A DNA stretch of 63,379 nt, filler included, from Hyphochytrium catenoides (taxonomy: Eukaryota > Protista > Hyphochytriomycota): NCBI GenBank assembly GCA_900088475.1. It is 9 parts of 9 records of this genome, joined end to end, with 100 filler letters (N's around TTAATTAATTAA, not from the genome) between each part and the next. Parts side by side here need not be neighbours in the genome. Positions count along the whole stretch, not along the records: positions 6,212 to 20,553 come from FLMG01004671.1; 8 more parts are not named here. One strand, written 5' to 3'. The position numbers and the translations under genes were made by a program. This document shows positions 6,212-20,553 of the stretch, in pieces; within the stretch, counting starts at the first letter, position 1, and the number at the start of each line of letters is the position of its first letter. The notes beneath the pieces are model-generated. The model made no database searches and had not been told where the DNA came from. It saw nothing but the letters and a program-made list of their open reading frames with translations.

Positions 6212-7789
6212 CATCACTCCACCGCCAGGGTCGAAGAGAATTGAAGCTCGTGTACCATCGGGGTTCCCGTCTCCTATCCCGATGGCACGGAGGCTTCATT
6301 TCTTGGCCGGACGGCCTCCTCTCCTCTGAGACTTCTTCCATGCGGCAACGCACTCCTTCCACGCCGCCCAATAGTCCGCGTCGCCCGCGTCCCTATGAGG
6401 TTTATTAGGGCAATCGTCGGCGTCGGCACGATGCCCAGGATTTCCACACCCAAAGCACAAGGGGACGTTGGGGTTCTGAGGGCGGCCTGAGCCGTCACCA
6501 GCCGGGTGTTCTCCCAAAAGCCTCCTCAGTTGCGCCCTGTTTTTCTGGCTCAACTCCATTGAACGGAGCGCGTTCAGGTGATGAGTGGCGTTTGGAGAAG
6601 GAGTCTCGTTGGCACCCCGACTCTTCCCTCCTCTTCCGTAGGCTTGGAAGTGTACCTCCTCCAAGTCATATAGGCGGTCCAACATCTCATCGACAGACTT
6701 GAAGGTGTAGAACTCCACTGCGTCTTCTCATAGATATGAGGGACTCCAAAGGTGAGGTCATACAACCGCTGCATCAGCACCTCCTCCTTCATGCTGAAGC
6801 AGTTCAGGCGCAAGTTGTCGAACTCTCTAAGGTACCGTTCGACATTTTCATCCCGTTTGCAAGGCTGCATCAGGGAAAGTTGTCGGCGGGACCTTTCTTC
6901 CAGGAGATGGCACTTGTGCTTCTTCAGCAGTGCCTTGGCGAGTTCACTCCACGTTGCCTGCGTCCGGTTGCCCTTGTTCGCTCTTGACTGCAGCCATGCG
7001 TGGAGCCAGGATTCCGCCTTATCTTTGAGGTAACTCGAGGCAAGGGTGCCTCTGGTGACCCCGTCCAAATCCCCTTGGAGGGAGAGAAACTTGTCCATTG
7101 CCCGCACCCATTGAATGGTAGCGAGAGGAGAAGCAGTCGCACCACCGCGAAACTCCGTGGGCTTGTGGATCAGCTTCGTCAGATCCCAGTGGCTCGATGC
7201 CGGTTTGCTTCTTCCTTGCGAGGCAATCCCCATCTCCACGCCTTCGTCTGATTCCAAAGCTGCATCACTCTGAGGGTCTGCCTCGTCCGGGGTGGACAAG
7301 CCCATGCCTGTGATTAAGCGCTCTAACTTCACTGCACTGTGCGGGGCAGCAAACCCCGGGCGCTCATCAGCATCCGCGTAAACAACCTGCTTCTTCTTCT
7401 TCTGAACTGCAGCAGCAGGTGTGAACAATCCTCCCAACCAACTTTCCTTGGTTGGATTTCTTGTGTCACCACCTTCCCTACCTGCCTTCTCGGTGGGAGT
7501 CGACAAGACCAGCGGGGTCTTTGCCGTGGCGGGGACGTTGAACGTGCTGTCCTCGCTCTCGATCTGCTTGTCCGCGACAAGGAGAGACTTGAGATCCTCA
7601 AGATGGGCAGCATTCGGTCGCCTGAAGTTGGTCCTGAAGACCACTCAGGATCTTAGCCAGGGTCTGAACCCGACTTTCCAATTGAGCAACCTGTGCTCCA
7701 GAGCCGTCATCCGGCCAGCGCTGACAACCGACTGCGCGTAAGCCGGTGGAGGCGCGGATGAGGGCTGCGATGGGTTCAAGTCAGTCATG
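6212..7789 (-). pseudogene. Ty3/gypsy-type gag (frameshifted) followed by start of putative aspartic protease; truncated by scaffold end
   Basis: Capsid-like KPTEFRGG...QWVRAMDKFL...LASSYLKDKAESWL...VERYLREFDNL, zinc knuckle CFGCGNPGHRADADDC, then ILFDPGG after the gag stop. Frameshifts near 7700, 7620 and 6720. Confidence 0.85.
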
Positions 7790-10912: not shown

Positions 10913-12805
10913 ATGCCGCTCTCTGCCGCAGCGAAGCGGGCTCGCAAGCAATGGGACCAGACAATGGCTGCCAGCGGCATCAAAAACAAGTTCACGGAGA
11001 GCTTGAAGCCCAAGAAGAGATCTTCAGGTCAGAAGTTGAGATCTGGAGATCTCTTTCTCTGGTAGCTTCCCATTCCTCCTACCTCCTTCTATGTCCTGTT
11101 ATTACCTCTGGCTCTCCTTGAAGCACTATCCTTTGCTTTCTGATACTCGCGCTGCTTGAATATATGGAAGAGTGGTAAGGTCCTCGCCTATGGCTTTTCA
11201 GTCTCTTGCTGACGGTGGTTTCCATGCAGGGCGGTCCGTTGTTCTCAGTAAGGCCATGAGGGAAGTGGATGCAGAGACCCGACAGCAAGTGCGTCTCCTT
11301 TCCTCTATGTTTAGTCTCAATCTACAATCCTACGTCCTCCCCCTGCTTCCGTGTACGCTGGATGATCCTCTGCCAAGAAATGATCCTTACCGTGGCTGCT
11401 TCTTCTGCTCGTCACGTATCTCCTCTCCCCGTGACCCACATCTGTTCTCCCTGTTCCTCCTAACAGTATACTGCTCCGGTGTCTCTCTCCTCCTCTCTTT
11501 TGATTACTTACCGTTTCAATGGCGCGTGAAAGACTATAGCTCTATGAACGCTCCTCTTCTAGTTTGTGGCCGAGACTAGCCGCGTTCCCTAGATCTATTC
11601 ACTAACTTTGTACGTCTCCCTTTTGCCATAAATAAGTGGCCAATGACACTCCCTGTGTTCTCATCTGCGGGGTCTCACGTTGTCCTCTCTTCCTGTCTCA
11701 TTTCTTTTCCGTCTATCACTGTTATCTGGCTCTCTCATATCTTTCTGGAACCCCTGGTAGGTGCGAGACGCCCGTCTAGAGGCACTTGAAGCTGATAACT
11801 ATGTGGAGGTCGAGTTAGAGAAGGATGACGATGATATGTACCTTGAAGAGGAGGTAAGCCCATTATGAAGGTGTCCATACGTCCTTCTCTTTTCAGAACC
11901 TTATCTATCTTTCAAGGCTTCCAGTAACGAGCATCCTGTCTCCCTCTGTCCCTCTATTCTCTACACTTCTGTGCCGCTGGCGCTTCTGCAAGGAGGATGA
12001 GCCGAAACGGAAAAAGGACAAGACTCTGAAGCGTAAGCGAAACACAGCCGGCAAGCAAGGAACCAGGTAACTCTTCGCGATGAAGCTCAGTCATAGGGAT
12101 AAGGACAAAGGCTGTGCTACTCCTCTTCTCTTTGCCCTTGTGTCTGCTCAGGAGGCGCTCAATACTTCTCTGCAATAGTGTATAACTCTTAAATAGAAGC
12201 AATAGTACTACCGCAACCTTCTGTCTTGACAGCTCACTGTCTTTACCTTGCTAGGAGGCCAAGGAAAGTACGAAGCCTTAGACATCTAACCCACGACCTA
12301 TTGGTAGGTAGTGCCTGCGCAGCTCCTCTCACCAACATCCAGATAATTATTTTGCTTTCTCCGCTGTTCCCTCTTCATGCCCCTTTCCTTTGCCTTCGTA
12401 AAGCCAAGTGATAAAGCAGGGGGATCTCCAAGCAGGCCTACCTTCCTCTCCATCGCCGTCAAGCCTTCGATCTACCCCCCTCGTCACTTCTGCTCAGTCT
12501 GTGGATATCCTTTTCAACATCAACTGACTGTGCTCCTCCTCAGTCATCTCTGGCTCTCTCCTCTTTGATCGGTCTTGTATTCTTGCTGTTCCGCTCCCCT
12601 TAAACCGCATTTTCTTCGCCCACAGGGGCATCACTTCTCCCTATCATTGCTCGGCTTATCGACACCTATTAGTGCACCCTTAACTCTCTTCCTCTCTCTT
12701 ACCCTTGTGAGCAAATATTCGTGCACTCGCTGTGGGTCACGATACTGTTCCATTCAGTGCCAAGACCATCACATGGAGACGCGGTGCCTAAAGTTTGGAA
12801 TGTGA
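10913..12805 (+). CDS. ZNHIT1: Zinc finger HIT domain protein 1 / SWR1 complex subunit SWC6 (Vps71)
   Basis: Seven exons give ...VRDARLEALEADNY...PTFLSIAVKPSIYPPRHFCSVCG|LVSKYSCTRCGSRYCSIQCQDHHMETRCLKFGM*. The RLEALExDN motif plus the HIT zinc finger ending in HxETRCLK are diagnostic. Confidence 0.92.
12505..12702 (+). other. U12-type (minor spliceosome) AT-AC intron
   Basis: 5' splice site ATATCCTTTT, branch point CCTTAAC at 12678-12684, 3' end TAC at 12700-12702. Removing it restores the in-frame HIT finger (TGT GG|C CTT GTG AGC AAA TAT). Confidence 0.92.
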
Positions 12806-13811: not shown

Positions 13812-14955
13812 CTACCGCTGCGTCATGGTTGCCGCTAGCTGACAGTCTTCTATCCCTAGCGCTAGCGGACTAGAGAGTGAAGGACTGACGAGCTCAACTT
13901 CGGGAGCCTTCTGTGGCCCGGCCTCCAGGTAAGCCATGGAGATATCCTCTCCCATCTCTATCCGGCTGATGTCGTAGATCAGCTTCTGGTATCTGAGGTG
14001 TCAAGGAGTGGGACAACATTAAGCAACTAAAGTGGACAGGGAGAGAGAGAGAGGGAAACAGGAAGAGAGACGGACTAGACACACAGACACACAGAGACAG
14101 CCAGAAGGACGAAAAACAGGCGATAGCCTGGCAGCTAGCCAGGTGCCAAACTCTGTCCCGATGTGACTCTTCTCTTTTCCCTTAAACGTCACCCTGACCC
14201 CACCTCTGTCCTTTCTTTCACCAATCAATGCTTGAAGAATACTTCTCCAGTTCCTACTTCTCTTCCTCTCTCTCAATATGTCTCTGTCTTTCTCTCTCTT
14301 GATATCCTCTTCTTGTCCCTTCTCTTCCATTGTCCTTCTCGTCGTCTCACCTCTTCATGATGTCAGTAGGAGTCCTTCCAGGCAACATGCTTGCGATGTT
14401 CACCCAGCGCTGCGGACAATTTTCTTCATAGATTGCCAGTCCATTCTCAAATCTCTTCTCTTCTTCCTTTGTCCAGACAGACTGATCCACAAAGTCCACG
14501 GCGCAATGCATCGACAGAGGAGAGGCATCTCTGTCTCCTATTTCCATGTTAGGTCCCCTCTCTTCTCTTTCTCTCTCTCTCTCCTGGAGTCGCAAGAAGT
14601 ACTTGTGCGCGTGCAGCTTGACCTCCTCCTCGCTCCAATCTCCTCCTATGTACTCTTTGATAAGCTGCCACTCTTTCCCAGTCTTCCCTCCACCGAACCG
14701 CTCAAGCGCTTCAATGAAGCGGCTGTGTTCCTTCTCTGTGAGGCGCTGGAAGACATTCAAAGGATATGGACAGCCAACAGGAAGAAAGAGAGAAAGAGAG
14801 AGAGAGAGGAGTGAGGACTCTAAAGTATCCATGGGATAATCACGAAGAAAGATAGCGGCAGATATTTAGGTGGAGAACAGAGCCAGTGGCATAGAAGAGA
14901 AAAAAGCCCCGGCAGCGACGAGGAGAGAAGAGAGAGAGCAGACAGAGAGAGAGAC

Positions 14956-14987
<32 letters not shown>

Positions 14988-15486
14988 AGAGAAGAGCAAA
15001 CTGAGTAAGGGGCATAGAGTTAGTATATGCCTTACCCGTAGCTGGCCCCTTTGGGCGCTCATCCTCCTCCTCTCGCTCGACACCAGATCTCGGACAGCGC
15101 TGGCAGCTTAGGGCCACATCTCTGACAATGAAAGCCCCCGAGGAGCTGCCAGAAGAGTGATAAGATGAAGGCGTACGGCGTCCTGAAAGCAGAAGAGAAA
15201 AATGAGAGAAGGATAACTCCGTCTTCTAATCTGTGGCTGTGGCTCCGGGCTGTGAAGAGGTAGAGTTGAGCCAATCAGCGCTCCAGTCCGTACATCAGCG
15301 CTGCGCTCAGGTTTCCTTTCCCCTATTACTCTTTCTCTCTCACCTCTTTCCCTTATCTCTTTCTTTGCCCTACTCGCTCTCTCTCCCTCTACTGACTCTC
15401 TGTCTCTCTCTGTCTCTCTGTCTCTCTGTCTCTTCCTCCCTGCCTCTTTCTCTCTTCCTCTCTCTCTCTCTTTTCCCTCGTCGCGG

Positions 15487-15543
<57 letters not shown>

Positions 15544-15675
15544 GAGCCCAAGATGTAGCAGAGTAAGGAGGAAGTACGAGTATGACGGGAAGGAAGGGAG
15601 AGGGAGGAGGAAGAGAGACAGAGAGAAAAAACGGCTGTAACCTTTCGACAAATGGTACAAGGCGTGCCGGTTCAT
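13812..15675 (-). CDS. Two-repeat MYB/SANT DNA-binding protein (SHAQKYF-like repeat plus DIVARICATA-like repeat)
   Basis: Spliced product: KGPATEKEHSRFIEALERFG...EEEVKLHAHKYFLRL, then WTKEEEKRFENGLAIYEENCPQRWVNIASMLPGRTPTDIMKR|YQKLIYDISRIEMG. The 5' exons are less certain. Confidence 0.8.
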
Positions 15676-16328
15676 GGTCCTGACCGTACTGATTCAGGAT
15701 GGGATGGGTGGTCATGCTGGTAGCGAACCGCCATCAAATCTTCGATGACAGGTGACAGACTGACAGACTTTCCGTCACGACCACGCTCTGTCTCTCTCTC
15801 TCTCTCTACCCGTTGCCTATCGCTCTCGTCTCCCTCTCTCTCTCTCCTGGCTCTCTCTCTCCTCATGACACTCTTTCTGCATCCCCCTCTCTCTCTTTAT
15901 CTTTCTCATCATCTCCCTGTCTCTTCCTGTCCCTTACTATCACTCTCTCTCCGTCTCTCTCTCTCTCTCTCTCTCCCCTTCTCTGTCTCTCTGTCTCTAG
16001 CTCTTCTTGTCTTGCTCTCTTTCAGAAGCTCAGAAGTCTTAGTCTAGGAGTTTTGCTTCTCTCTTCTCCCAAACCACTGAGCTTCCCTCTCACCTAGAAC
16101 TTCTCCTCTTCCCCTTTACTAGAGAGTGACCAGGTCTGGGCCTCCGCTTGCCTACTTTTAACCTCTGGGAAGGTAGAGTCCACTCTTCCCTCTCTTGCCG
16201 GGACGTTGGCCAGAGCGCAGCCTTTACTACTCAGAGATCTCTTCAGCCTGGCCTTTCCTTCTCTGTCACTCATCAGCCTCTCTCTCCCCCTTTCGCTTCT
16301 AGGATTAAGCTCTTCCACGTCAAGCTCG

Positions 16329-17213
16329 ATGGAGCAACGTACAGACTCCCAGCCTTCTTTCGATCTATTCCTTCTTGCTGGGCAGTCCAATATGGCCGGG
16401 AGAGGAGGACTCTTCGAAGACGAGGCCAGCGGCAGACCTAGATGGGATCAATGGAGTCCAAGCAGTTGGACAGAGAAAGAAAAGTCAATCTGGCGGTTTG
16501 GACCGTCTGAAGTTTGGGAGATGGCCAAGGAGCCGTTGCATGGCGATGTAGACACGAAGAAGGTGAACGGAGTTGGTCCTGGCCTGGCTTTTGCTAACAA
16601 ACTGTTAGCGTTGGACCAAGAGGAGAAGGCTCAAGAGGGCGATGACAGTCAAGCAGGAGAGAGTCACAAGCGACAGGAGAGAGTGTTAGGGCTAATTCCA
16701 TGTGCCATTGGAGGCACGTCAGTGACCGAGTGGGATAAAGATTCCGCCTCTCCTCTCTCTCTTTATCAGAACACGGTCCATCGTACGCGAAGAGCCTTAG
16801 AAGCTCCCCTCATGATAGCGTCTCAGCCCGTCTACGGCCGCTTGAAGGCTTTGCTTTGGTATCAAGGAGAGAGTGATGCAGAGACTCTAGAAGATGCGCT
16901 GGCTTATGGAGAGAGATTATACTCCTTTCTCTCCTCTCTCAGAAAGGATCTAGCCCATCCGTTGTTACCTGTTATCCTCATTGCCGTGTCTTCCCTTCCT
17001 TTGGACATCACCCAGCACATAGAGGAAGTAAGACAGCAACAAAAGGAAGTGAGCAAGAGGCTGCCTCAGACGCTCTTGATAGAGACAAAGGGATACACCT
17101 TCCTTCCCGACGGGCTGCATCTAGACACCTCTTCCCAGTTAGACTTAGGAAAGAAGATAGCACTAGCGGTGAAGACCTTGGAGAGAGAGAGAGAAGAACT
17201 TGGATGTCTTTAA
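16329..17213 (+). CDS. SGNH-fold carbohydrate/sialate O-acetylesterase (SASA domain, CE6-like), intronless
   Basis: Motifs FLLAGQSNMAGRG, EPLHGDVD, GVGPGLAFA, GLIPCAIGGTS, LWYQGESDA and DGLHL. First ATG at 16329; the frame is open upstream past TTG 16206 with a hydrophobic stretch. Confidence 0.92.
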   Translation: MEQRTDSQPSFDLFLLAGQSNMAGRGGLFEDEASGRPRWDQWSPSSWTEKEKSIWRFGPSEVWEMAKEPLHGDVDTKKVNGVGPGLAFANKLLALDQEEKAQEGDDSQAGESHKRQERVLGLIPCAIGGTSVTEWDKDSASPLSLYQNTVHRTRRALEAPLMIASQPVYGRLKALLWYQGESDAETLEDALAYGERLYSFLSSLRKDLAHPLLPVILIAVSSLPLDITQHIEEVRQQQKEVSKRLPQTLLIETKGYTFLPDGLHLDTSSQLDLGKKIALAVKTLEREREELGCL

Positions 17214-17393: not shown

Positions 17394-19844
17394 TTAGACC
17401 GCGTCCAGCACGTTGTCCGGAACTCTTGCTCTGACAAGTGCATCCATAACGAGGTCTACCACGCCAATCTTCCCTTGGGCGTCGTTCCAGACGTTCCCAA
17501 TCTCCCTCTTGAACGCTTTCCCGCCCCTCTCCCCGCTGCGTGAGACATGTAATGTTAGTAGCGCCGCAGGACATCAACCTCCGCTCAGAAACGGCTTTCA
17601 AATTGCTCCGTCTCTTTCTCTCTCTCGTTCCTCTTGATAGCCCATTATCTCCATGGATTAATTTAACCCTACTCCAAACCTGCCATGGACTCCAAAGAAA
17701 GCACTTTCTTCGAACACACGTCGCCACACCATATTCACCCTTAGACAGCTCCCCAGCCTATTCCACCTACCTGAAGAGCCCAAACAGCGGCTTGGCAAGC
17801 GTCATCGTTGAAACAGGCTCCCTCTCCTGAAAGTCTGAAGCGTAGTCGAGGTACCTCTCCACCACCTCCCTCCTGGAAAGACCAGGACTTTCTTTACCAT
17901 AGAAGACAGGGTCTACGCTTTTGAAGCCCCAAGGAGAGTTATAAGCGGCGCGTCCGACCATCACGCCGCTTATTTCGCGATGCTCTATCATAAGAGAGAA
18001 AGCAGATTCAGTGGCAACTAAGTGACAGGAGACAGTCATGCAACAAGGGAGAATCGCTTTCAGCTCGACGTCTATGTACCAGCGGGGAGTAGCAGATGGT
18101 GCTATAGACAGCGGAAGAAGCAAGAGGCAGTCCTAGAGGCAGATTGGTCTGCTGCGAGCTCTCTGAGCTCTCTGAGCAGCAGCACAGGGTGCTTCTACCC
18201 CCAACATAATAAACAAACATGCGAAAAATGATCTTGCCGACTTAGCCCCTCGGCCGTTGTCTAAGCGCTCCCCATACCTACCAGATAGAAGCTCTTGGGC
18301 ATGCTCCATTGACTTTATGCCTCCATTCAAATAGAACTCCAGATGAGGAAAGTCTCCTTTGAGCCTGAAGACGCGGTCGTACTGCAGTGGCGGGATGGAG
18401 CGGTTCTCCGCTGTTGAAAGCCCTTCCAGTAGGCATTTACGAGCATGGAGCGTGAAATGTCTGACGCCTGAGGCCGATACGGTCTCAATGAAGGAGCGGA
18501 GATACTCATAGCTACCGAGCGAGAAGGACAGACACGGAGAGGCAACGTGTAAGCACCTGGTGCCACGGTGGAGAAGCTAGGTCTAAAGGTCGGCAAGACA
18601 GGGCTGAAGTGTTCCGGGAGAAGTACAATCACAAAGAAAGAAATAATGATTGGTCTGCACCTACGAGTCAAAGTCATCCACTCCCAGCCTGCACTTCACC
18701 GTGACCTCTGTTCCCGGTAGCTCTCTTCTGAGAGCAGCAGTGATCTCTCTCACTCGTTGTGGCTCTAACATCAGCCGTGCGCCGAAGCAGCCGCCGGAGA
18801 CCTTAGGAGAAGGGCACCCGACGTTGAGATTGATTTCTTCAAAATGACAGAAAGCAGAGGCGAGCCGTGCAGCCTCTGAATGGAAAGCCAATCGAGGATG
18901 ACAGAGAGGGAGAGACAAAGGAACACGGGGTATGCCGCAGTTAGTTATAGCCACAAGAGGACGACATGGGGCAAGAGAGAGACTGAAGGCCCTTTAGAAG
19001 CGAGACAAGGACCGCTTTGGAGAGAAGAAGCTTCAATAAGAATCGCAAAGAAGCCAGATCTACCCAGAGCCTCTATCAAGCAGCAGGCTGCAGAGAGATG
19101 ATGCCGTTCTAGGGCGAAGAAGAGAGAAAGAGGAGCGGTTCGATGAAGTTAGGGCAAGCTTAAGGGAGAAGCAGGGTCTAGATCATGAAGCCAGAACGGA
19201 CCAAGCCTCTCCTCCGCACCGTACCGCTGAGCTTCTCTGGGTCTGATCCCCCGAGCTGCAACGCTAGAGGATGCTCAACCTCACTATGACCGAGGAATGG
19301 CTCCAGACGATCTCGCTGGAATAAGATCTGGAGAAGAGGAGTTGGTGCTTGAGAGACATCCATCAGGAAGAATAATCCAGGCCAAAGAGAGAGAGACAGA
19401 ATGAGAGAGAGACAGAGAGCTGAAGGTCAGGAGAGAAGGAAAGAAAGACATGGCGTCTTGAGTGGTGTTGAAGAAATAGGGAATAGTGGAGAAACACGAA
19501 GTCAGAGAGAGGAAGAGAGAGAGAGAGAAAGAGAGTGAGAAAGAGGAAGAGCGAGAGAGAGGAAAAGATGAGGATAGAGAGAGGATTTGGAGCAAAAGAG
19601 ATAGAGTGAGCGCCAGAATCTCAGGCTCGAGGCCTATAACGCCTCACCGTGTTGTCCACCACCATTTCTGTGTAAAGCAATGCATGTCTGGTGATGAGCC
19701 GCATCATGAAGCGATAGTGCCGGTCCGTCCAGTCCATCTAAAGGGGCCACAGATATAGAAGAAGAGAGAGAGACAGAAAGGTGAGAGTTCGCGTGCATAG
19801 AGAAGGCTGGCGGAGGGAGAGGAACAAGGCGACGGACGAGCACA

Positions 19845-19902
<58 letters not shown>

Positions 19903-19983
19903 GAGGAGAAGGAGGACGACACATGCATATAGCATACGACTTACCATGGGAGCCACGGAGAAGCGCCTCATGTTATCCGTCAT
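17394..19983 (-). CDS. dusA: tRNA-dihydrouridine(20/20a) synthase, DusA type
   Basis: Seven exons: FSVAPM|MDWTDRHYRF...LYTEMV, EHPLALQLGGSDP, EINLNVGCPS, VTVKCRLGVDD, HARKCLLEGLS...NRSIPPLQY, NGGI, GVMVGRAAY, ending VPDNVLDAV*. The start may extend upstream in frame. Confidence 0.92.
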
Positions 19984-20553
19984 TGGTGATTGACTGCCGG
20001 CGTCTTCCCGACTACTCTCAAGCTCCTCACGCCCTGATGTGGTTCTAGCAGCTGAACTCCTGCGACGCTTGCTTCTTTGCTTTGGCAGAGAAGGGACTCG
20101 TGAGTCCTGAGAGAGAGAGAGAGGACAGTCTTCGCCTGCTGTGCCTCTGCTGCTGCTGCTCTCTCCTCTTACTCTGCGGCAGACCGTGCTCCGTCGCTTG
20201 TGGCTCTTCCGTCTTTCCCAATCGCTCCTTGGAGTTCTTGTTTTCTTTCTTGCCTCTCTTCTCTCTCTCTCTCTTCCCTCTCCCTGTCTCTCTCTCGTCT
20301 CTCTCTCTCTCTCTCTCTCTCGCTCTCTCTCGCTCTCTCTCGCTCTCCCTCTCTCTCTCTCTCTCTCTTCTCTTATAAGAAGTGCCATCATCATCAGAAC
20401 ATCCCCAACCATCACCTCACTACCCGATCCTAGACCACCTTCTGGCCTCAGTAATAGTTCTACCAGCTCCCCTACCCCAATAATACGCCGCTCTGCTTGA
20501 CTTGACCCTTTCCTCTGTCTCCCTCGTTCTGTCTCTCTTGGTGTCCGTTAGCT

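Follow-up and report, generated by a model that had tools for sequence, protein, structure and literature searches.

Minor (U12-type) introns and minor small nuclear RNAs (snRNAs) have been documented in the oomycetes Phytophthora, Hyaloperonospora, Saprolegnia (for whose introns see Larue and Roy 2023, PMC10639083), and Achlya and in Blastocystis, and both are reported missing from ochrophytes and alveolates. The closest described counterparts of the intron considered here are the AT-AC introns of Phytophthora sojae and P. infestans (Bartschat and Samuelsson 2010, PMC2846911), in which the 5' splice site ATATCCTTTT is combined with a TCCTTAAC-type branch site and a long spacing to the 3' splice site. 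Blastocystis, like the organism studied here a stramenopile, possesses all four minor snRNAs and shows a strong AT-AC bias in its minor introns (Gentekaki et al. 2017, PMC5608401). We analysed a stretch of 63,379 nucleotides, filler included, from the genome of Hyphochytrium catenoides (assembly GCA_900088475.1); this whole stretch is called the window, and positions are counted along it. At 12505-12702 on its plus strand lies what is most probably a genuine U12-type AT-AC spliceosomal intron, the last of five in a single-copy orthologue of ZNHIT1/Vps71; on the sequence evidence given below, we put the probability of this reading at about 0.88. The intron resembles those of Phytophthora in its 5' splice site, its type of branch site, and its long spacing, and the two genomes are alike in having few minor introns. 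It differs from them in its host gene, as the printed exons flanking the Phytophthora introns do not match ZNHIT1, and in its lineage, the Hyphochytriomycota, to which the oomycetes are the sister lineage within the Pseudofungi.

The published assembly of H. catenoides ATCC 18719 comprises 4758 scaffolds and one mitochondrial record, with each gene having 3.64 introns on average and with introns averaging 208 bp in length (PMC5795050); our genome searches covered 61.0 Mb in 4759 contigs. The rps3 qPCR primers that the genome paper gives as specific to the species both match G000:C3234 (forward primer at 926-945, complement of the reverse primer at 1091-1110), and the predicted product is exactly the 185 bp published. 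A coccidian, which the CT-rich introns had suggested, was set aside because no SRS domain or AMA-1 was found, and an alga because no LHC protein was found. Exons were queried individually in the homology searches and were joined only for tests of coordinates and of the Cys/His pattern. The reference for exon junctions was P0006, a transcript-derived and intron-free ZNHIT1 orthologue of 154 amino acids from MMETSP. The gene model occupies 11190-12805 on the plus strand, and its reading frame of 172 codons is divided among six exons as follows.

11190-11288, plus strand: exon 1, with the ATG at 11190, reading MAFQ...VDAETRQQ and aligning to P0006 residues 8-26
11289-11760, plus strand: intron 1, GT-AG, 472 nt, GTGCGT...GGTAG, with flanking exons that abut at P0006 residues 26/27
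11761-11853, plus strand: exon 2, beginning VRDARLEALEADNY and aligning to P0006 residues 27-58
11854-11992, plus strand: intron 2, GT-AG, 139 nt, GTAAGC...GCAAG
11993-12066, plus strand: exon 3, with the basic KRKKDK region
12067-12254, plus strand: intron 3, GT-AG, 188 nt, GTAACT...GCTAG
12255-12303, plus strand: exon 4, RPRKVRSLRHLTHDLL
12304-12403, plus strand: intron 4, GT-AG, 100 nt, GTAGGT...GTAAAG
12404-12504, plus strand: exon 5, ending PPRHFCSVC plus GG, the first Cys pair of the HIT finger, with its last residue at P0006 C120 (BLASTP)
12505-12702, plus strand: intron 5, probable U12-type AT-AC, 198 nt, phase 2 within a Gly codon
12703-12805, plus strand: exon 6, the remaining HIT finger, with the stop TGA at 12803-12805

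Exons 1, 2, 5, and 6 were collinear with P0006. Exon 6 matched the Pfam zf-HIT profile (PF04438) over positions 12-29/30 with a score of 28.7 bits (cut-off 24.7), and profile positions 1-11, which hold the first C-x2-C, must derive from exon 5. The top match of exon 6 in the PDB was human ZNHIT1 (8x15_L, residues 124-152, E 2.8e-8), with Hit1, ZNHIT2, and Vps71 ranking behind it, and an exhaustive HMMER search with the same exon returned orthologues only, all at <=77% identity. In common with human ZNHIT1 and yeast Vps71 (the SRCAP/SWR1 subunit; PDB 8x15 and 6gej), the model has a conserved N-terminal helix, a basic stretch, and a HIT finger at the extreme C-terminus that ends ETRCLKF/W. A single copy of the locus was found in the genome. 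The results support the assignment of the gene as the ZNHIT1/Vps71 orthologue of H. catenoides, and its product would by homology be a subunit of an SWR1/SRCAP-type H2A.Z exchange complex.

AT-AC boundaries occur in this gene only at intron 5. The following elements were recognised in it.

12505-12514, plus strand: U12-type 5' splice site ATATCCTTTT, which agrees with the consensus /RTATCCTT(T) and is predicted to pair with the 5' end of U11
12677-12684, plus strand: branch-point sequence CCCTTAAC (consensus TCCTTAAC), predicted to pair with U12
12701-12702, plus strand: terminal AC of the intron

The intron begins ATATCCTTTTCA and ends CTCTTAC, and it is rich in pyrimidines (72 T, 70 C, 31 A, and 25 G). 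Its 5' splice site matches the U12 consensus at 9/9 positions and its branch site at 7/8; the branch A, which is the second A of CCCTTAAC, is located at 12683. The frame from 12404 reads PSDKAGGSPSRPTFLSIAVKPSIYPPRHFCSVC and then GG, the C at 12703 completes the Gly codon, and exon 6 then reads LVSKYSCTRCGSRYCSIQCQDHHMETRCLKFGM up to the stop, with the excision joining HFCSVC-G to LVSKYSCTRCGSRYCS in frame. Exon 5 ends at P0006 residue 120, and the third residue of exon 6 falls on residue 124, so that its first falls on 122. The split Gly codon therefore corresponds to residue 121, and the two halves abut with neither gap nor overlap. When the intron is retained, translation stops at a TGA at 12566-12568. 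The earlier note on this DNA had described a 198-nt intron with CCTTAAC near a terminal AC, and on re-reading this was accurate in every detail. It had further claimed an in-frame join at CSVCG, which proved exact against both P0006 and human ZNHIT1; a stop on retention that would leave half a finger, which was located where it had been placed; and consensus signals of the minor spliceosome, with which the splice-site and branch-site matches and the AC at the frame-keeping position agree. Its statement that the other introns are GT-AG holds for the remaining four of ZNHIT1.

It is conceivable that the segment is not spliced at all. The gene would then be a pseudogene, or its protein would end prematurely after CSVCGYPFQHQLTVLLLSHLWLSPL, and the agreement with consensus motifs would be fortuitous. 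In favour of this explanation, exon 1 matched no deposited protein when region 5-46 of window 11160-11576 was used in a word search. Against it, the six exons are all open and collinear with orthologues, the second half of the finger is preserved downstream with 60-77% identity to orthologues, and no other ZNHIT1 copy was found in the genome. The only pairing of ATATCCTTT with CCTTAAC within 14.3 kb is that of intron 5, and by our own rough arithmetic, based on the base composition of the intron, the joint chance of ATATCCTTT at the frame-exact donor, CCTTAAC in its window, and AC at the acceptor is ~1e-9. We consider the unspliced alternative very unlikely. A U12-like motif, ATATCCTTTG, was also seen at about 14767 on the minus strand, just upstream of an acceptor of a Myb gene; no branch site is suitably spaced from it, and it was read as a chance occurrence.

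The genome was then searched with the Rfam covariance models for U11, U12, U4atac, and U6atac, a check that the earlier note had proposed, and the matches were compared with the gathering scores. Loci were found for all four; their coordinates, given here without regard to which RNA is which, are C215:48-177, C1601:51116-51259, C1895:24516-24643, and C2738:62297-62465.

U12: 55.9 bits, gathering score 53, full-length, single locus
U11: 47.5 bits, gathering score 39, full-length, single locus
U6atac: 69.5 bits, gathering score 33, full-length, single locus (L004:1501-1628, minus strand)
U4atac: 47 bits, E 1.6e-5, gathering score 53 (match below it), full-length, single locus (L003:48-177, plus strand)

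Conserved functional motifs and Sm-like sites are kept in each of the four RNAs, and the U6atac gene has a TATA-like box upstream and U8 at its terminus. The 5' end of U11, AUAAAGGGC, is predicted to pair with UCCUUU of the ZNHIT1 5' splice site, and U12 GAGUAAGGAAA with CCCUUAACUC of intron 5 (U12 pairing segment GAGUAAGG, predicted energy -10.6 kcal/mol). Nucleotides 2-12 of U4atac, CCGUCCUUGUC, are the perfect complement of nucleotides 38-48 of U6atac, GACAAGGACGG, giving a stem II of 11 bp, and both strands of this stem are altered compensatorily relative to the Rfam consensus. Because the changes in the two RNAs compensate each other, we argue that the U4atac is genuine, and on covariance-model evidence we conclude that genes for all four minor snRNAs are present in the H. 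catenoides genome. Among proteins of the minor spliceosome, for which the earlier note had suggested looking for orthologues of SNRNP25 and SNRNP48, the former may be represented by an SNRNP25-type ubiquitin-like domain on C3288. Two exons encode it, each part scored above the Pfam cut-off, and it gave a weak match to SNRNP25 in the PDB. For the latter, only a candidate was obtained, a CHHC finger on C4334 with weak resemblance to U11-48K. A second match to zf-U11-48K (L005) resembles TRM13 rather than 48K and was set aside. The proposal of the earlier note that the minor machinery has been retained is supported by the genes for U11, U12, and U6atac, all above the Rfam thresholds, by the stem II of the sub-threshold U4atac, and by the SNRNP25-like gene.

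Several observations weigh against the assignment of intron 5 to the minor class or against a functioning minor spliceosome. The gap of 19 nt between the branch A and the final base of the intron is long by animal standards; a comparable gap of about 16-21 nt is found in the U12 introns of Phytophthora (PMC2846911). The U4atac match falls under its gathering score, as the values above show, which fits the reported rarity of U4atac detection at strict thresholds outside opisthokonts (PMC11347168). [quoted passage not shown] This [GU]CCGA or "CC variant" of U6atac is shared with oomycetes and is also known in Acanthamoeba, Physarum, and others, the pairing between U6atac and the 5' splice site being left unexplained (PMC2396436). 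PDCD7/59K was not found in the genome search, which among proteins of the minor spliceosome covered this one, SNRNP25, and U11-48K. Finally, ATATCCTTTT occurs 170 times genome-wide compared with 140 times in a reversed control, and GTATCCTTTT occurs 99 times compared with 129. Since neither of these U12 5' splice-site 10-mers shows clear enrichment, minor introns must be rare in H. catenoides; we would expect between a few and a few dozen, most of them AT-AC. They are likewise few in Phytophthora, where expressed sequence tags yielded two AT-AC introns and one GT-AG intron.

A few animal AT-AC introns are U2-type and are removed by the major spliceosome. Intron 5 might belong with them, being a real AT-AC intron that is excised by the U2-type machinery; the absence from U6atac of AAGGA, the element expected to pair with the ZNHIT1 5' splice site, is in keeping with this. 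However, U2-type AT-AC introns have 5' splice sites resembling ATAAGT and are not known to contain TCCTTAAC, and intron 5 follows the U12 consensus at all nine splice-site positions and at all but one position of the branch site. It is also predicted to form base pairs with U11 and U12 as encoded by the same genome, which has kept the whole set of minor snRNAs. Excision by the major spliceosome is accordingly less likely still than the absence of splicing.

The exact junction was examined by enumerating all GT, GC, and AT donors in 12440-12600 in combination with all AG and AC acceptors in 12600-12780. Use of a different GT-AG junction was among the outcomes that the earlier note had named as incompatible with its reading, and in this full enumeration no GT-AG pair gave the complete HIT Cys/His pattern or restored the finger. 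Under loose spacing the complete pattern was obtained with three pairs only: 12505-12702, AT-AC 12505-12684, and GC-AG 12532-12711. The pair 12505-12702 alone reproduces the orthologue spacing C-x2-C-G-x4-Y-x-C. That one of the other two non-canonical junctions is in use is the least likely of the alternatives: although they are the only other pairs to give C-x2-C...C-x2-C...C-x3-H...C, they lengthen the stretch between the Cys pairs by 6 (12505-12684) and 8 (12532-12711) residues, an insertion seen in none of the orthologues, the acceptor at 12684 sits within the branch-site motif itself, and GCTCCT, the sequence at the GC donor 12532, does not resemble a splice donor.

We therefore favour 12505-12702 as a U12-type intron, and we infer that it is removed in vivo by the minor spliceosome. 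If minor splicing proceeds here as is established elsewhere, ATATCCTTTT and CCCTTAAC in intron 5 would be recognised by the U11/U12 di-snRNP, and U4atac/U6atac.U5 would then join the complex. The excision would fuse GG|C into a Gly codon and reconstitute the C-x2-C-G-x4-Y-x-C-x2-C HIT zinc finger of ZNHIT1. Because unspliced ZNHIT1 would be without half of its zinc finger, the function of the protein in SWR1/SRCAP-type H2A.Z exchange, and with it H2A.Z deposition, would depend on minor splicing.

To find further introns of this type, 100 of the 170 genomic ATATCCTTTT sites were inspected. Three of these, ZNHIT1 included, looked convincing, with a consensus branch site well spaced from AC and reading frames open to either side, compared with the hundreds of minor introns in Blastocystis. 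The two additional sites lie only 6 kb apart.

G000:C748:12991-13368 (= L052:1292-1669), plus strand: AT-AC intron of 378 nt in a homologue of BRCC36/BRCC3 (JAMM deubiquitinase), ATATCCTTTTCA ... TCCTTAACTCCTAGCAC
G000:C748:6844-7119 (= L051:1245-1520), plus strand: third candidate AT-AC U12-type intron, 276 nt, with branch site CCCTTAAC and 12 nt from the branch A to AC

The intron in the BRCC36 homologue has the 5' splice site ATATCCTTTT, the branch site TCCTTAAC, and a distance of 10 nt from the branch A to the 3' splice site. Its flanking exons end at residue 105 and start at residue 106 of human BRCC36 (PDB 6r8f_A), and the downstream exon bears the JAMM motif GWYHSHPH. By these sequence comparisons it is the second homology-exact AT-AC intron of U12 type in the genome. 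The third candidate is flanked by open frames of 79 and 64 codons, and these flanks gave no Pfam or PDB match with which the junction could be compared. Candidates were rejected at L021 and L022/L046, where U12-like motifs occur without coding flanks, and at L111, L102, L079, L114, and L063, where the motif pairs were unconvincing.

The position of intron 5 was compared with ZNHIT1 loci from environmental sequences. Most of these (58/65) read through C-x2-C-G and have no intron at the Hyphochytrium position. Two other eukaryotic contigs, L009 (GCA_020064105.1, JAITZM010027678.1) and L144 (metagenome Ga0247722_10018363), have an intron that coincides in position and phase with that of H. catenoides, splitting the Gly codon after C-x2-C; theirs are U2-type GT-AG introns (GTGCGT...CGCAG in L009 and a CT-repeat-rich GTAAGT...TTTCAG in L144) without U12 motifs. 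Conversion of U12-type to U2-type introns is a well-known direction of change. The common position is equally compatible with an old intron that switched type and with independent gains. It is conceivable, though doubtful, that the ZNHIT1 intron dates from a stramenopile or earlier ancestor and was kept as U12-type in Hyphochytrium while being converted to U2-type or lost elsewhere. In two GC-rich metagenome ZNHIT1 genes (L010:300-450 and L012:1590-1670), a GT-AG intron lies four codons downstream, after CSVCGFxS-; it may be either a nearby independent intron or one that has slid.

Among the papers searched, none joined Hyphochytrium with the minor spliceosome and none treated ZNHIT1 as a gene with a minor intron; U12 is not mentioned in the H. 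catenoides genome paper (PMC5795050). With the minor spliceosome of H. catenoides, a known system gains a further lineage, genuinely but not surprisingly; its retention is to be expected because the sister oomycetes already have minor splicing, and nothing is overturned. The results place a working-looking minor spliceosome in the Hyphochytriomycota, fill a gap between the oomycetes and the remaining stramenopiles, and support retention of this machinery in the common ancestor of the Pseudofungi. They also add a U4atac that is authenticated by compensatory pairing instead of by its Rfam score, which is useful given how rarely this RNA is detected outside opisthokonts. Ordinary GT-AG gene predictors will mis-model the ZNHIT1 and BRCC36 homologues in this genome, and AT-AC introns verified by homology help its annotation. 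The findings are of modest interest to specialists in intron evolution. Were the ZNHIT1 intron indeed old, Hyphochytrium would offer a small, tractable, and cultured system with a handful of AT-AC introns, in which one could ask how a "CC-variant" spliceosome, whose U6atac does not form the textbook 5' splice-site pairing, recognises its substrates and why genes for chromatin and DNA repair (ZNHIT1 and BRCC36) keep such introns.

Several other features were observed around ZNHIT1 in the window. On the minus strand at 6296-7644, two overlapping open frames contain a match to Pfam Retrotrans_gag (E 8e-9) and the CCHC knuckle CFGCGNPGH. They belong to a Ty3/gypsy-like element of which the 5' part is present, the end of the contig having cut it off, and the G+C content of the region is raised (55-58%). 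The Myb gene mentioned above (14347-14832, minus strand) is of the two-repeat DIVARICATA/SHAQKYF type, with a HAHKYF motif and a match to Pfam Myb_DNA-binding (E 1e-16). At 16206-17213 on the plus strand, one exon encodes a carbohydrate esterase of the SASA/DUF303 type (Pfam E 1.5e-63). It is most closely related to proteins of plants named "probable carbohydrate esterase At4g34215", with which it shares ~40% identity, making it a plant-like gene in a non-photosynthetic stramenopile. Several exons of a putative tRNA-dihydrouridine synthase (DusA-like) were recognised by translation by eye at about 17770-19000 on the minus strand (NVGCPSPKV, FTLHARK, and GVMVGRAAY). Long (CT)n/(GA)n and (CA)n microsatellites at 14800-16100 and 19300-20500 give rise to SLSLSL/RERERE open frames on both strands, and CT-repeat-rich introns are also found in the metagenome contig L144, which has a ZNHIT1 intron at the Hyphochytrium position.

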